From Bispira polyomma (lineage: Eukaryota), in contig OZ287751.1 of NCBI GenBank assembly GCA_965649765.1, positions 92,132,001 through 92,196,000 on the forward strand: a DNA stretch of 64,000 nucleotides. The letters run 5' to 3'. Positions 461-9,666 of this stretch are shown piece by piece. Numbering within the stretch: position 1 is the stretch's first letter; every line of letters starts with the position of its first letter. The notes beneath the pieces are model-generated. The model saw only the letters and a list, made by a program, of their open reading frames with translations, searched no databases and was not told the origin of the DNA. Position numbers and translations under genes: made by a program.

Positions 461-1189
461 CAGGGTTGGAAGGTTTTTGACGACCATGGATAAAACCTAT
501 GGTTTTATCCGGTTTAAAAAATACTTTGGAAAAAGAGATATCAAGTGTAGCCAAGTTAAAAAAGGGCAAGAAATGTTTGTAAAAAATCCTAGTATATAAT
601 GTAAAAACATCTAAACTTAATCAGAAATATATTGAAAACACTGTAACACTAAACACTCTTTTGTATTACAAATAGGTCAAAATACAACAATTGTGAGACA
701 TTTTAACTCAGGCTACTTATGTTTAAGTTTTAGCCTGCAAAATGTATTCCTAATCCCCTCTGCCTTTAGACACAATCAGATGATTTATGGACATAAGCCC
801 CCCCCCCCCCCACCCCTTATTTCCAAGGGGTTGCAAAAGCTTCCTCTACATAGGACAAATCCCCCCTGCCTTATCACAAATATATGCAAGAAGTAAATCT
901 TGACTGATTTTATGATTTTTTAAGTATTAGTTTTTAGTATTATCATTATCAATTAGATTATAATAATCCTGATTACAATAATCATAAAACCTCATTGTGG
1001 AGTTATTAGTATTAAAGACAAAAAGAGTGACTTGTGATAAAAGCTTTAAAGTGGAGGGTGACAAGTTATGAGTAGAAAAGAGGGTTTTTGACAGTTTTTG
1101 ATGGTTTAAACCAGTTTTTGACGGTTTAAACCTAGTTTTTGACGCCGTCATGTCAAAAACAGGTTTTAGACGACAAAAACCCAACCCTG
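461..1189. mobile_element. Non-autonomous hAT-type DNA transposon
   Basis: Termini CAGGGTTGG...CCAACCCTG flanked by a perfect 8-bp direct repeat CTTAACAG (453-460, 1190-1197). Confidence 0.88.
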
Positions 1190-1312
1190 CTTAACAGGGC
1201 GTCCTATTTCTAGTTATCAATTGCTACCGTTACCCTGGATATTAGGGGCATATTATTATACACATGTAGTCAGTCCAAAATTATTCTTTTATTTTTTTGG
1301 TAAATTTTTCAG

Positions 1313-1460
1313 CCTATAGACTTCATTAGACCATTCACCAATGATGGCGAGAGTAATATGAAAATCCATTTCAACCATGGTACAACAACCCTGGGGTTCA
1401 AGTTCCAGCACGGAGTGATCATAGCTGTAGACTCCAGAGCAACTGCTGGCCAGTGGATTG
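1313..1460 (+). CDS. PSMB5: Proteasome subunit beta5 (PSMB5/8-type), internal coding exon: propeptide end and mature N-terminus with catalytic Thr1
   Basis: ttttcAG at 1311-1312, GT at 1461. 148 nt reading [23 protein letters not shown]|[26 protein letters not shown], the classic HGTTTL...DSRAT beta5 motif. Ends in phase 1. The start-codon exon is not in the window. Confidence 0.97.
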
Positions 1461-2219
1461 GTAAATTGTTTTGTCATCTTTGATCAGGATCATTTGGATA
1501 TAAGTACAGTTCAATACATAATTATCTTAAACCTATCGGTACTTTGATTCGAACTAAAACTGTGTTTAGAAACAAAATTAATTAATTATGAAAAATTAAG
1601 AGGGTTCTGTTTTGTCGTGTTTTAATTTGATGTTTTAAAATAGAACAGTAGGCGGAAGGGGGTGCTGTTGGCTGTTGTGTCTATTTATTTTGAGAATCAT
1701 GGTTACAAAAACAAAATACAGAATTTGTATGAGATTTACTGAGGATTAAATATTGTTTATCTGTTGGACTGCTTGTATTACAATTCACAAACAAGTCGGT
1801 GGCAAAGCAAAATTCAAAATAAGATCCATTGTGACAATACATATTGTACAGATTTTATTTAATTATTAAAAGCAGTAATTTTTTTATCAACCCACCTACC
1901 CAACTTATTTGGTAAAACAAAATCATAGAGATATCTTTCTTTGACATTTTACCTAGTCGTTGTGTTGATTCTGTATTTCTTCATTGACGATAGTTGATGT
2001 TTCCTAGTATGTGTGCAAAACTGAAAATATTCTTTGTACTAACCTTATTATTATTGCCGGCAGTTGTTAAAATTTGTTAAATACTCTTGTCTGCAGTTGT
2101 TATAATTCATTAAATACTACTCAAATCATAAATATTGGGGGAAAATAGTTGGCACAAGTGATGTTTTTTAAATGACAGTCGTTATCATTTATTGATGGTT
2201 ATTACCGTTGTCCTTTTAG

Positions 2220-2331
2220 CCTGGAATGATATCAATAAAGTTATACAGATGGGTCCCTATATGCTGGGTACTATGGCTGGGGGGGCAGCGGATTGTCAGT
2301 ATTGGCATACCTTTATCAAAAAAGAAGCCAG
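2220..2331 (+). CDS. PSMB5: Beta5 alternative exon A: divergent copy of the active-site/S1-pocket exon, putative mutually exclusive exon
   Basis: ccttttAG at 2218-2219, GT at 2332. 112 nt, phase 1 to phase 2, open: (A)[36 protein letters not shown](R). Same length and phases as 4563-4674; 19/38 aa identical. Expression is not shown by the sequence. Confidence 0.85.
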
Positions 2332-2529
2332 GTACCAATCTAGCATTGTGGCGGCAGTTTTGATTTCATAGAGCGAAACACATATATAGCATGAGTTATT
2401 TGATTCAAATTTATTTTCAGAGTATGTTGCGGTTACTTTTGTTTGGTACTGTGTTTAACCGTAATGCATTTATTGTTTTAATGGAGGACAGTAACAAACA
2501 GTGCATGCCATAAATTTTCAGTTCATTAA

Positions 2530-3180
2530 TTGTATCCACCGGAGGAGTAACTCCGGTGGATACTATGGATTAGTCATCGTTACGCCGCCGCCGCCGCCGC
2601 ATCAGTGTATGTAAAGATTTTACCGTTACCGCTCTCCTGGGAAAACTTGTACACCTAGGCTCCTAAAATTTACAGGAAATGTTGTTTATCGCAAAACCTT
2701 GCCAAACTTAAAAGTGCCTATATCTTGCTTATTATTGGTCCGACAGGTTTGGAGTACCAAATAAATCTACAGAAAATCATGGGCTGGGAATCTTTTCATG
2801 CACTCAGATTTGACCTTGAGCCTCTCGTTCAAGGTCAAATGCAGATGGCCAAACTTAAATGGTCAAGGTCAGTCTTGGTCAAACTTAAAAGTGCCTATAT
2901 CTCGCTTATTATTAGTCGTACAGGTTTGGGATGTGAAACCAACCTATAGGAAATCATTTGCTGCTAAGCTTTTGCTGTGGTCAGATTTGACATTAGATCC
3001 CCTGTGCAAGGTCAAATGGGTAGGCCAAACTTTAAAGTGCCTATTTCCCACATGTTTGCAATGTGAAACCCACTTCTGCGATTTAAGGCTTTAGCATAAA
3101 TGCCCTATAGAAAATCATAGGCTCCTAGCTTGGGTGCTAGCTAGGTTGCTTGCTACCTAAAGTGCTTGCTACCTGGGATG
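2530..3180 (+). mobile_element. HINE/Helentron-derived (DINE-1/pearl-like) non-autonomous element
   Basis: Subterminal palindrome GTATCCACCGGAG..CTCCGGTGGATAC, a (GCC)n microsatellite, then degenerate tandem units (ggtcaaacttaaaagtgcctatatct...). Right end approximate. Confidence 0.6.
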
Positions 3181-3409
3181 CTTTGTTGTTTGGTCTAGTT
3201 AATTTTCCTTTGCGGTATATTATATTTTCAAGGTGAGTTGCAGTTATGTGTCCCCAATTGTTTGTTCATCATACACCTGTGTATACAATATAAAAATGTA
3301 AAAAAAAAGTGCAGTACAATTATTTAGATTTATTTAAATTCAGTAGCAGGTTAATATAGTTACAAATAATATCTGAAATAAAACCGAATAATTTAACTAT
3401 ATTTTAGAT

Positions 3410-3727
3410 TAAGGCTGCGAGTCGGGGTGTGTGAAGTGCATCGATTATCGCCCACTCGGACTTGTTGCATCATTCAATGCATCAAAAACTCCATTTTAAC
3501 CAAATAAAGTGCTGATACATACCTAGTCTCTACTGTTTTTTATGTTTTCCCACAATATACCTTCAAATTTATGTGTAAAACGACAGTGTGCTTTTGGGTG
3601 TATACTAAAATTCAGCCAATAGGGAGTACTATATAAATGATCGAGTCGCAAAGCCTGGCTCGATGTATCCTTTTTCTTGTCTCACTCGATTAATGCATCG
3701 ATGCTAGGGCTAATCGTCGCAGCCTTA
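3410..3727. mobile_element. hAT-type MITE
   Basis: TIR TAAGGCTGCGA...TCGCAGCCTTA with 8-bp TSD TTTTAGAT (3402-3409, 3728-3735). Confidence 0.88.
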
Positions 3728-3943
3728 TTTTAGATGTTGGTGACTGTTTACTGACCCAGTGTAAAGTTATAAGATATTTAACAATTTACTAATTTATATA
3801 ATTATCAGTTAATATACTTACAGGTAAAATATGAATGAATGTTGTGGTAGTAGCAGTGTTTTCATTTCAAATTTTAGTTTGAAGTGAGATAAAGGCAGTT
3901 TAGGTGCAGATTTTGTTCCAACTACCGGTATAATGTTACAGAT

Positions 3944-4079
3944 AGAGTAAGGAATCTGAAATTTCCCTCTGTACCAAAATTAGGGCAAAATAAATGCAAA
4001 AATCTCAAATACAGCAAATATTACCCCCAATTCTACAAAAAAACACAGTTGCAGTGGCGAATTTTAGATTCCTTACTCT
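3944..4079. mobile_element. MITE with AGAGTAAGGAATC termini; longer copies at ~18990-19217 and ~30880-31107
   Basis: TIR AGAGTAAGGAATCT...AGATTCCTTACTCT with TA flanks; three related copies in the window. Confidence 0.8.
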
Positions 4080-4325
4080 AATTTTTACAGTATGTATTAT
4101 AAACCTGTCATTAATTCATGGTGTTTTAACATAATTTGTGTATTGGTTTGAAATTTTATCATTTGCCGAATCAGTGTCCACATTTGGTTTGCATAAGCTT
4201 CAATACTTCACTGGACTGTTTCATGTTCAATGACATTACGATGCATTAATGACAGGTTACATATGTTTTGGTATTGATAGAAAATTACTTTTTTTAACAA
4301 TCTGGGTATGCACAAGTTTTTGTTA

Positions 4326-4512
4326 TTCAGTTGTACCCCTCTAAGTAGAACTCTTGTTTAATGGAAGTCCCTTTTGTGTAGACAAAATTCTCCAGTGCGA
4401 TAAACATTCATTTTCCTTTAGAAATCTACCTCTGATAAAGTGGTCATCTTTCTTAAGTAAACAATGTTCTATACTTGTCCCTTGAGGTTCGACTTAAAGA
4501 GGTTCAACTGTA
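4326..4512. mobile_element. Tc1/pogo-like MITE family B (other copies ~16858, 20477, 25009, 38214, 45317, 49816, 53183)
   Basis: CAGT..ACCCCT.TAAGTAGAACTC ... GGTTCAACTG-TA termini shared with many copies. This copy ends ~50 nt before the exon B acceptor. Confidence 0.75.
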
Positions 4513-4562
4513 TTTTGTGCAGTGTTATAATTTTGTGTTGGTGTATGTATGTCATTCTTTAG

Positions 4563-4674
4563 CTTCACAGACAGTTAAAAAGGTGATAGAAATCAACCCC
4601 CACCTGCTGGGTACAATGGCAGGTGGAGCAGCGGACTGTTCTTTTTGGGAGAGGGTGCTAGCTAAACACTGCAG
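4563..4674 (+). CDS. PSMB5: Beta5 canonical exon B (mature residues 27-64)
   Basis: tctttAG at 4561-4562, GT at 4675. 112 nt: (A)[36 protein letters not shown](R), nearly identical to the constitutive beta5 sequence. Confidence 0.97.
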
Positions 4675-4696
4675 GTACACACTTGTGTGCTCCTTA

Positions 4697-5337
4697 TGCC
4701 CAGCCCTACCGGCCTTCACGCAAGTAGTCGTTACAAAAATCGTTTTGCGTAGGGTTTGCGTGGCATTTGCGGGAGTTGATGTAATATACATAAACATACA
4801 TAACCTGACGTGAGAGACGACATGCAAGTAATTCTTAATTTCAAACCGTTTGAAATTTGGACACGCAAGAGATGCAAAAATATGACTTACTGAAACCTTA
4901 ATTTTCACGTAAGCATTGCGACAGTTCGTGTGGGCCAACATGGTTTAACGTAATACAGGTAATAAAGCGAAAGATTACATAAAAATTGATGTAGCATTAC
5001 CTATATTACCGTAAAAAACGTAACCTTAGAACAGATTATGTAGAAAAACGTATATATAACATAAATGACATGGTTTAACGTAATATTACGGCCTTTAACT
5101 TCTCCATGTGCGTCGTCTTACAGGTATTTGCGTGTCCTTGCGTACACATTTTACGTGAATTGTTGCATCAGCTGCGTGTCTTTACAGGTATTGACATACA
5201 AATATGTTCTCTTTGTTACTTAATGCCTTTGACGTAAATAAATCGACTTCCCCTTGGGGTTTTCAACGTGTGCGTGGACTTTGGGAGAGCCCTGCGTGGG
5301 TAACATAGACTAACGTCAATCCGGTGGGACTGGGGCA
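4697..5337. mobile_element. PIF/Harbinger-like non-autonomous element; second copy ~62545-63016
   Basis: TIR-like ends CCCAG.CC.ACCG...CGGTGGGACTGGG. The first ~200 bp closely match 62545-62730. The second copy is flanked by TTA on both sides. Confidence 0.72.
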
Positions 5338-6203
5338 TTTAGGACACCTCTGACTTTCAATTTCGCCTTGCGATTTTCTCCGCTTACCAAGCATGTACTT
5401 TGCACATTTAAAACCGTTCATCGTCGAGTAATTCCTGTATTTAGTCGCAGTCAGGTTTGGTCATATCATGTATAGAGGAAAGTATAGCGATGCCCCCTGC
5501 TGTGCCACATTCATTGAGGAAATTTAGAAAAATCATAAATTTCCGCAATTGCCGTGGATATCTATGCTTATCCACAGTTTTCAGAAGGAAATCTCTGTGG
5601 GTTCAAAATATTATCCTGGTTACTTTGGGGATCTCTATGCGACCGGTTTATCGCCATAAACGTACAGGTATCTTTTTTTTCAACTCGCATAAGTGGGAGG
5701 CACCTTCAATGGATTTTAGTGTCAATTTGTATACAATAATAAAGATGTAGTGGATACTTTAGATTACAGCAGCAGTGTTCTGCGGAGGTTTGAATTTTCA
5801 AATACGCTTTAAAATAACCCGACAGTTTATTGTATAAATTTTTTTGCTTTAAGTTGACCGTCCCATGTTTAAATACAGTGAATATTGCGAATATATTTTC
5901 ATTAATGAATATTTCTTATATTTTTTACAATACCCAAAATAGCTCAAATGTATTGGCAGTAAAACGTTACAGTTATACAGTCTATGAGGCCATTATGAAA
6001 TGTCATTTGTATTCAGTGGTTTGTCTGTTACTGACCCAGTTATCTAGAATCTATCATTTGGAGGGAAATACTCCTCCCAGACTAGCAAGGGGGAAACTCC
6101 TAAAGATACTTACTCTCATAAGAATATACAGCTTTTTGTGAACTTTGACATTTTCCTGATATGATTTTTAAACAAAGAAATTACTGGTTAGAACACTACG
6201 TAA

Positions 6204-6383
<180 letters not shown>

Positions 6384-7443
6384 TGAGTTTAATATTCTAG
6401 TCTTAATGATGCAGTAGATCCTCTTCTGTTAAAATTTCTATTTTGAAAATATTTGATTTGATGAACCAATTTCAACTCTCCCAAATTTATGTTTTCCTGT
6501 ACTGTTTGATAAATAAATGCTTCTTTTATTTTTTTCTCGGCTTTCTATTTTCTGAACAAAACCTTGATCTCCCAACATGGTTAAAGTAGGTTATAGTAGC
6601 TTCTACTGTATTTATTTCCTTAAGAACTTAAGTGATATTTATATTTATGAGTTCAAACAATTAAGAAACAATCGAGGCAGAATTTGTATTTCTTTTCCCC
6701 TGTACCTGTCCTGTATGAGCTCATTATGAATCTATCAGGCAGTAGAAATGTGTTGCCTCCACTTTAATACAATATATTTTGTCATGCCAATGAGCTGTTT
6801 AGAAGATCTACGATGTCCTCGTATATTACATAAGACTTTAAGTTTACAATGGATGACAATTTCACTTAACTTTACAATCTGTTATATTTTCTTTTGTTTT
6901 ACACTAAAATCCCTCTTCTATTTGATAATCTTTTTATTATCCGATCAAAGTCTTGCTGTTCCCCCCAATATGTTTGGATAATAGAATTTCTACTGTATTT
7001 GTACAGTACAATGTCATCCTCTATCCAATGTAACTGTTCTACTCCATTTACAATAGCCTCTCTGTTGCTAGAACTAGTACATAGGCGGTCACAATACCGG
7101 TCATAGTACTGTTTGACGCATGTTTGAATGCTTGAAATGTAGATTTATTAAAAATAAAATCAAGTATTCTGTACTTTAATTCATAGACATGAAGTAGAAT
7201 GTCTTTTCAGTATTAAATTTTCGTCGATAAAGTATTTAAAAATGCAACAGACAGTATTGTGACCCGACGGGTATTATAAACGACTGTGTAATCAAATTAG
7301 GTATAAAGTAGAAGTTGGTTGCAGGTAGAAATAAACTGAGTAGATATTGGACATTTGACTTATGTAGAGCTACTGTAGTTTGTGTGTAGGTTTTGTACAG
7401 GGGGAAACAATGACTTTGATACATACTGTCCCACAATCTCATA

Positions 7444-8114: not shown

Positions 8115-8254
8115 GGCACCATGATCTGTGGATGGGATAAGAAGGGTCCTGGTCTGTATTATGTGGACAGTGATGGTACACGGCTCACCAACAACATCTT
8201 CAGTGTGGGCTCGGGCTCCCCATATGCCTATGGGGTGTTAGACAGTGGATACAA
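8115..8254 (+). CDS. PSMB5: Beta5 coding exon
   Basis: Poly-T tract then acAG, GT at 8255. 140 nt: [46 protein letters not shown], including the GSG motif. Confidence 0.97.
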
Positions 8255-8958: not shown

Positions 8959-9053
8959 GTGGGACTTAGAAGTGGATGACGCCTATCAATTGGGGCGAAA
9001 GGCCATTTACCACGCCACGTACAGAGATGCTTTCAGTGGTGGCACCATAAGCT
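8959..9053 (+). CDS. PSMB5: Beta5 coding exon
   Basis: ctAG 8957-8958, GTAAGT at 9054. 95 nt: [31 protein letters not shown], with the RDxxSGG motif. Confidence 0.96.
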
Positions 9054-9577: not shown

Positions 9578-9666
9578 TGTACCACATGAAAGAAACCGGT
9601 TGGGTGAAGGTTTCCATGGATAATGTACTAGATCTCCATTACAAGTATGCTGAAGAGAAGAAATAG
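9578..9666 (+). CDS. PSMB5: Beta5 terminal coding exon
   Basis: Poly-T then cAG 9576-9577. (L)YHMKETGWVKVSMDNVLDLHYKYAEEKK then TAG at 9664-9666. Confidence 0.96.

Follow-up and report, generated by a model that had tools for sequence, protein, structure and literature searches.

Two homologous copies of exon 3 in an annelid-like proteasome beta5 gene, probably spliced in mutual exclusion

Within its first 10 kb, the window (the whole stretch of 64,000 nucleotides of DNA that was analysed) holds most of one proteasome beta5 gene, PSMB5, on the + strand, and two homologous copies of exon 3, here termed A and B, lie in tandem within this gene. The reading that we prefer, with a probability of roughly 0.68, is that these copies are spliced exclusively of one another, with exon B supplying the housekeeping beta5 and exon A a selectively maintained version of the subunit in which the pocket region has been rebuilt. 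An ancient tandem duplication would have yielded two interchangeable copies of the exon in a single gene. The module swapped between them would be residues 27-64, which comprise the strand carrying the S3/S1 residues 27, 31 and 35 together with Lys33, followed by Met45, Gly47 and the helix from Ala49 to Cys63. Isoform A, whose module is rebuilt at W28, D30, I31, G38, M41, I/V59, K/Q60, E62 and A63, would be a lineage-specific and faster-evolving beta5 that keeps its catalytic residues and probably differs in S1/S3 geometry and helix packing, and through these in its cleavage or inhibitor profile.

The beta5 gene and its two third exons

The gene matches the Ntn hydrolase family PF00227 (Table 1). 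Its constant exons are 76-83% identical to beta5 of annelids and other invertebrates and come nearest to annelid-like sequences, with 82-83% identity to marine transcripts and 81% to the cluster that includes Arenicola marina beta5. Proteasomes are expected to draw on 14 subunit genes, and PF00227 recovers 13 proteasome loci in the 1.04-Gb genome, with no sign there of an extra beta5 gene. The window PSMB5 is most likely the single beta5 gene of a spiralian, and probably of an annelid.

Residues are numbered here with Thr1 of the motif HG/TTTLGF in exon 2 as residue 1, which places both copies of exon 3 at residues 27-64; this agrees with the numbering of mature beta5 and beta5i chains in the PDB, where residue 4 of the query is aligned to chain residue 31. 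Exon 2 reads ..IHFNHG/TTTLGFKF and thus contains the autoprocessing site Gly-1/Thr1 and the N-terminal Thr1; it ends with a single base (G) of codon 27 at the donor TTG/gtaaat. Exons A and B share the same phase, are flanked by AG on the 5' side and GT on the 3' side, and both start after that one base of the split codon 27, with ccttttag/ as the acceptor and CAG/gtacca as the donor of exon A. At the other end, the first base of exon 4 completes codon 64 (AG/A, Arg) after exon A and exon B alike.

Table 1. Features of the PSMB5 gene in and beside the window (positions are those of the window unless another contig is named; a slash marks a splice junction)
Feature	Position	Strand	Content
Exon 1	outside the window, ~6.08 kb upstream of base 1 (L027:3922-4060)		MALADVCGFKPF...; MALADVCG...
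Exon 2	1313..1460	+	end of the propeptide, Gly-1/Thr1 processing site, residues 1-26
Intronic block	2120..2155	+	65-100 nt 5' of exon A; partial conservation with L029
Exon 3A	2220..2331	+	112 nt; A-type residues 27-64, last residue R
Exon 3B	4563..4674	+	112 nt; canonical residues 27-64, last residue R
Exon 4	6260..6359	+	30/33 residues identical to L029
Exon 5	8115..8254	+	GSGS (Ser129) motif; PF00227 match, E 5.4e-8; donor ACAA/gtatgt
Exon 6	8959..9053	+	Asp166 and Ser169 (RDAFSGG)
Last exon, coding part	9578..9666	+	-LYHMKETGWVKVSMDNVLDLHYKYAEEKK, then stop

Thr1, Asp17, Lys33, Gly47, Ser129, Asp166 and Ser169 have established roles in the proteasome beta family, and the gene encodes this catalytic set in full. 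The constant exons retain Thr1, Asp17 (in the AVDSRAT motif of exon 2), Ser129, Asp166 and Ser169, and Lys33 and Gly47 are present in both copies of exon 3. Exon A therefore keeps the catalytic and oxyanion residues that fall within it, K33 and G47, in addition to M45, A49 and A50. The first coding exon (MALADVCGFKPFSGSSF...) lies upstream of the window, beyond an intron 1 of ~7.3 kb. The introns near exons A and B (2400-3200, 3400-3800, 4000-4200 and 4400-5600) are packed with high-copy repeats, whose word depth in three DNA runs reaches thousands of times the single-copy level, and a (GCC)6 run is found at ~2581-2598.

Exon B is a typical metazoan beta5 segment that has 32-36 of 38 residues in common with its counterparts from sponge to amphioxus. 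Exon A differs from it at 19 of 37 residues and is identical at the remaining 18 of 37, with a nucleotide identity of 59%, a dN of 0.46 and a dS of 1.69; at 8 of the 18 identical residues the two exons use different codons. Searched against the whole 1.04-Gb genome, exon A matches itself and exon B alone (E 8.9e-7), a likeness that we judge to be far beyond chance, and its best PDB matches are all beta5 or beta5i chains, with no other beta subunit among them. A preliminary description of this DNA, made from the letters alone, had listed nine substitutions from B to A (S28W, Q29N, T30D, V31I, K32N, S53Q, F54Y, H62E and C63A) and seven retained residues (K33, I35, M45, G47, A49, D51 and C52). 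Both lists are correct, and ten further differences can be added: E36Q, I37M, N38G, H40Y, L41M, E56H, R57T, V58F, L59I and A60K. Exon A is covered without any difference by three DNA runs from two samples. In contigs of these runs compared over positions 1001-7000, exon 2, the intron and exon A follow each other unbroken; since the contigs cross introns without splice joints, the runs represent DNA, and the 'joints' listed for them all lie in intronic repeats.

The reading frames constrain how the two copies can be used. Computed translation of an mRNA with both A and B terminates 13 nt into exon B; with both skipped, it terminates four codons into exon 4. Because 112 nt is not a multiple of 3 and both or neither of the exons leads to an early stop, only mRNAs with exactly one of them would be productive. 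From these frames we infer that the splicing of A and B is most likely mutually exclusive.

A-type exons in other lineages and the selection acting on them

A search with the 36-residue exon A peptide against 1.84 billion representative proteins yielded, among its best 150 matches, only two further A-type segments, both as short open frames on Logan contigs. On the first contig, L029 (SRR20820736, genomic), which comes from a second and deeply diverged species, the order is exon 2, A-type exon, B-type exon and exon 4, and the A-type and B-type exons are each 112 nt long with canonical AG/GT sites. The second, L028 (SRR23287134), is organized differently: it carries a canonical beta5 gene with a B-type exon alone, after an intron of ~60 nt, and also a divergent beta5 paralog whose exon 3 is A-type and again 112 nt long; the introns of this paralog have the same phases, and Gly-1/Thr1 and Asp17 are kept. 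In this otherwise intact paralog the A-type is the only version of exon 3. The two genes of L028 lie head-to-head, ~0.5 kb apart (L028:1-620 on the - strand and 1000-2190 on the + strand), and may share a bidirectional promoter; the strongly diverged member has Pro27, Asn52 and Thr169.

The three A-type exons (window, L029 and L028) form one clade with 100/99 support and a long stem in a phylogeny of the 38 columns of the exon segment. Exon A of the window is identical to the other two at 26-27 of 38 residues, and the members of the clade also have a 19-residue stretch of exon 2 in common. A sister relationship between the A and B exons of the window is rejected (p-AU 0.013). Therefore, the duplication is older than the split of the three lineages. 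Alternative exons and paralogs are known to replace one another in other tandem-exon systems, a pattern that the gene duplicate of L028 fits, and by this analogy the alternative-exon layout and the two-gene layout appear to be interchangeable states of one system.

Synonymous sites between the window and L029 are saturated, with dS values of 1.6-1.8 or undefined (the latter for exon B and exon 4). Against this background, exon 2 is identical at 35 of 35 residues (dN 0, dS 1.6), and exon A keeps 25 of 36 residues with a dN of 0.244, a dS of ~1.8 and an omega of ~0.14. The dN of exon B is 0.056, and exon A has evolved 4-5 times faster. Neutral drift across a distance at which dS is saturated would not have spared the frame, the length, the splice sites and two thirds of the residues. 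Exon A is thus under purifying selection and is no relic.

The faster evolution of exon A is nonetheless what would be expected of a duplicate that is silent or in decay, a pseudo-exon that functional mRNA does not include. The A-type of L029 lacks Trp55 and Ala49, which are invariant elsewhere, and has S49; that of L028 has lost Cys52; and these losses could mean relaxed constraint. The same interpretation could also draw on the lack of any A-type segment among the annotated proteins of the ~160 clusters listed in the profile searches described below. Set against it is the fact that three lineages, at saturated dS, have all preserved an open frame, the length of 112 nt, the phase and the acceptor and donor sites. 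The omega of ~0.14, the different codons at 8 of the 18 residues on which A and B agree, and the use of the A-type as the sole exon 3 of the L028 paralog also speak against it. On this evidence we regard a pseudo-exon as unlikely.

The frameshift that separates A from B could alternatively serve a regulatory 'poison' exon, whereby mRNAs including both copies are sent to nonsense-mediated decay and the dosage of beta5 is tuned with no need for an A-type protein. The stop 13 nt into exon B on double inclusion would fit such a device. So would an intronic block upstream of exon A (TCAAATCA ... GAAAAT.GTTG) that is partly conserved between the window and L029. A poison exon has no need for conservation at the protein level, yet Lys33, Gly47 and a core of 10 residues are kept under the low omega given above, and a homologue of the exon is the lone coding version in the L028 paralog. 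These features make a purely regulatory exon quite improbable. The intronic block is itself a possible, if weak, candidate for a splicing-regulatory element. A docking/selector type of RNA pairing was considered for it and set aside, as shuffled blocks do as well (29/40 and 32/40 shuffles), and the duplex search against shuffled blocks found no conserved RNA structure that would enforce an exclusive choice. Thus, mutually exclusive use of two coding exons continues to be the reading that we favor.

The rebuilt segment and its likeness to beta5i

To place the A-type residues in a wider context, we compared them with 133 distinct canonical segments of residues 27-64 from plants, fungi, sponges, cnidarians, spiralians and deuterostomes, with beta5i included (Table 2). 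The A-type hallmarks occur in 0-4% of these segments, with the exception of M41 and E62, and V31, which is replaced in all A-types, is found in 131 of the 133. From sponge to amphioxus the canonical segment hardly varies, so that the A-type is a deep rebuild of it. W28, D30, I31, G38 and A63 are unlike any beta5, beta5i or fungal or plant beta5 that was compared.

Table 2. A-type residues among 133 canonical 27-64 segments (a set that is partly biased, one third having been chosen for likeness to exon A)
Residue	Class	Frequency	Remark
W28	A-type hallmark	0%
D30	A-type hallmark	1%
I31	A-type hallmark	0%	in all three A-types
N32	shared with beta5i	8%	mostly beta5i
G38	A-type hallmark	0%
M41	A-type hallmark	23%	mostly plants
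Q53	shared with beta5i	56%
Y54	shared with beta5i	42%
Not Glu at 56	A-type hallmark		E56 in 88/133
I/V59	A-type hallmark	I59 0%	V59 missing from the list of canonical residues
K/Q60	A-type hallmark	K60 0%	Q60 missing from the list of canonical residues
E62	A-type hallmark, shared with beta5i	24%
A63	A-type hallmark	4%

The substitutions fall in a part of the subunit that shapes the substrate pockets. Residue 27, which lines S3, is A, E or P in the three A-types, and residue 31, which lines S1, changes from V to I in all three; changes along the Ala49-Cys63 helix are likewise common to them. Going by the alternation of side chains along a strand, residues 27, 31, 33 and 35 would face the substrate channel and residues 28, 30 and 32 would point the opposite way; we suspect a repacking of W28 and D30 against the altered helix, with no direct contact to the substrate. 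The substitutions known from bortezomib resistance (M45V/I, A49T/V, C52F and C63F) are all absent from exon A of the window. Cys63 itself lies in the helix that carries Ala49 and Ala50, and its replacement by Phe has been reported to tilt this helix relative to the active site (PMC4177604).

Changes of this depth could also have produced an isoform that is made but is catalytically impaired or fails to assemble, and that acts as a pseudo-enzyme or as a regulator of assembly. The replacement of the nearly invariant non-catalytic residues E36, I37, N38, L59, A60 and C63 and the variability of residue 27 among the A-types lend something to this idea. However, the catalytic residues of the exon are all kept, and the constant exons supply Thr1, Asp17, Ser129, Asp166 and Ser169 to either isoform, so that we consider an impaired isoform A very unlikely. 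The preliminary description had proposed that isoform A is catalytically competent with an altered cleavage preference. This proposal stands in so far as it rests on the kept catalytic residues, the purifying selection and the changes in the pocket region, and assembly of such an isoform into the 20S particle with altered specificity is what we would predict. The part of the proposal that drew on a beta5i-type likeness does not hold.

That likeness had been argued from sequences of human beta5i (..VNKVIE..ADCQYWERLLAKECR) and constitutive beta5 (beta5c). Both strings agree with database fragments, and N32, Q53, Y54 and E62 of exon A do coincide with beta5i residues. They could be taken to indicate a beta5i-type subunit convergent on LMP7, with an S1 pocket enlarged by Gln53 and with immune- or stress-induced expression. 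Two further observations lean the same way: exon A scores ~2.4 bits higher with human beta5i than with human beta5c, and a joint clade of A-types and beta5i, although not recovered, is also not rejected on the 38 columns (p-AU 0.48). This phylogeny of exons A and B with beta5 and beta5i had been suggested as a check, and in it the A-types form a clade of their own.

The four shared residues nevertheless carry little information on closer comparison. In plants, fungi and invertebrates, canonical beta5 often carries Q53, Y54 and E62 as well (Table 2); the preliminary description had itself cautioned that yeast beta5 has Q53 and that part of the match may be ancestral. N32 is restricted to the window species among the A-types, being L in L029 and K in L028. 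The residues that discriminate beta5i from beta5c (N32, S46, C48, Q53/Y54 and K61/E62) are not found as a set in exon A: S46 and C/S48 (S48 in fish) are absent from all A-types, and exon A carries A46 and G48, like beta5c. The overall similarity is no more specific. Exon A is identical to beta5i at 20-23 of 38 residues, to fungal beta5 at 22 of 38 and to invertebrate beta5 at 19-21 of 38; beta5i is closer to exon B (25-28/38) than to exon A; and the other two A-types, at 16-17/38 and 18-21/38, show no extra identity to beta5i. In the PDB comparison yeast beta5 scores level with human beta5i (41.5 and 41.4 bits), with human beta5c at 39.0 bits. The residues that define the A-type, W28, D30, I31, G38 and A63, are not those of beta5i.

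The contrast between Ser53 and Gln53, which the preliminary description had stressed, has to be read in the same light. This residue has been reported to govern the conformation of Met45 and to have a role in S1 (PMC8379283). As a distinction between the two exons it fails, since exon B of L029 also has Q53; the contrast is peculiar to exon B of the window species and does not separate A from B forms. Exon B of the window has Ser53-Phe54, like vertebrate beta5c, and exon B of L029 (1717-1828) has Gln53-Phe54. Residue 53 switches repeatedly between Ser, Gln and Ala among invertebrate beta5 and is labile outside vertebrates.

Taken together, the four residues shared with beta5i appear to be ancestral, common or coincidental states and not an immunoproteasome signature, and a beta5i-type subunit is a highly improbable explanation of exon A. 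Since exon A sits inside an invertebrate PSMB5 and its close relatives are the two invertebrate A-types only, we lean toward an origin independent of the jawed-vertebrate PSMB5/PSMB8 duplication. The likeness to beta5i would then be no signal of an immune function, which corrects a misleading reading of the segment.

Distribution of the A-type and relation to known systems

The specialized proteasomes known to date, namely the immunoproteasome, the thymoproteasome and the testis forms, arose by gene duplication. Beta5i (PSMB8/LMP7) and beta5t (PSMB11) resemble isoform A in being alternative versions of beta5 in which the pockets are changed and the catalytic machinery is kept. In contrast to the present case, jawed vertebrates encode beta5i in a gene of its own, whereas here just residues 27-64 would be swapped within one gene of an annelid-like animal; Q53, Y54 and E62 (and N32 in the window species only) are the residues in which exon A and beta5i coincide. 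The testis-specific Prosbeta5R genes of Drosophila are likewise beta5 paralogs formed by gene duplication. They offer a parallel in that a second beta5 exists beside the housekeeping one, and L028 has exactly this layout, but in the window species and L029 the second version is an alternative exon with no second gene. Fish PSMB8 shows a trans-species dimorphism of Ala31 and Phe31, an allelic or paralogous variation within beta5i, and the database yielded fish fragments carrying V31, A31 and F31. The common element is natural variation at the S1-lining residue 31 (I31 in the A-type, V31 in canonical beta5). The difference is that the change in the A-type is conservative, Val to Ile, and is part of the swap of a whole exon.

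As a genetic device, the arrangement recalls the mutually exclusive tandem exons of muscle myosin heavy chain, Dscam, Na/Ca channels and ATE1 (PMC9013439, PMC9741552, PMC5740500). As in those systems, homologous exons that lie side by side and agree in length and phase derive from an old duplication and exchange a structural module, and frame incompatibility would leave mRNAs with a single copy as the only productive ones. Unlike in those systems, it is the reading frames from which exclusive use is deduced here, and the search for a competing RNA structure gave none. The literature searches returned no paper that describes alternative or mutually exclusive exons for a subunit of the proteasome, and none citing the runs SRR20820736 or SRR23287134.

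On balance, and by a narrow lead, we think that some annelids have a second type of 20S proteasome obtained by exclusive splicing of an exon that encodes the S1/S3 wall and the Ala49-Cys63 helix of beta5. If so, it would be a splicing-based counterpart of the immuno- and thymoproteasomes of vertebrates, and one old enough for a lineage to have made a separate paralogous gene of it. A conserved exon that swaps residues 27-64 would represent a different route to specialized proteasomes and would reveal a diversification of proteasome specificity in invertebrates; the literature searched contains no earlier report of alternative exons being used to diversify the active sites of the proteasome core. 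The A-type would also constitute a natural experiment on the extent to which the S1/S3 wall and the Ala49-Cys63 helix tolerate rebuilding with the exon's catalytic residues intact.

Several searches bear on how widely the A-type is distributed. Two profile searches, with a full-length rotifer or annelid-like beta5 and three A-type peptides, recovered no A-type among ~160 different clusters, each search covering the best 120 of >7,000 matches; isoforms may hide inside the 90% clusters, which makes this absence a weak argument. The members of 10 annelid-like beta5 clusters, many of them transcript-derived, likewise include no A-type, and in the genomic loci of Owenia, Lamellibrachia, Ridgeia, a Mytilus and an octocoral-like contig the exon occurs once, in its B-type form, with no A-type beside it. 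A word search with the 69-residue open frame around exon A, a short query limited in length, gave no candidate. Two degenerate A-type DNA patterns were run against metagenome and metatranscriptome contigs and gave zero matches and one match, respectively; the latter (L035:732-773, WEDIGKVISGGPMM) is due to chance and falls in a bacterial RnfC-like gene unrelated to proteasomes. Because no further A-type was found in the listed clusters, the examined loci or the metagenome contigs, its range seems to be limited to a narrow and poorly sampled clade.

One of the loci examined shows a different kind of repetition in the same exon. In the PSMB5 of Owenia fusiformis (GCA_903813345.2), about seven tandem partial copies of the 5' half of exon 3 occupy L032:5338-5974 with a period of ~94 nt, 5' of the one genuine exon 3 (6009-6122). 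The array is either a minisatellite formed from half of the exon plus intron or an artefact of the assembly, and in the former case it would suggest that exon 3 is prone to tandem duplication.
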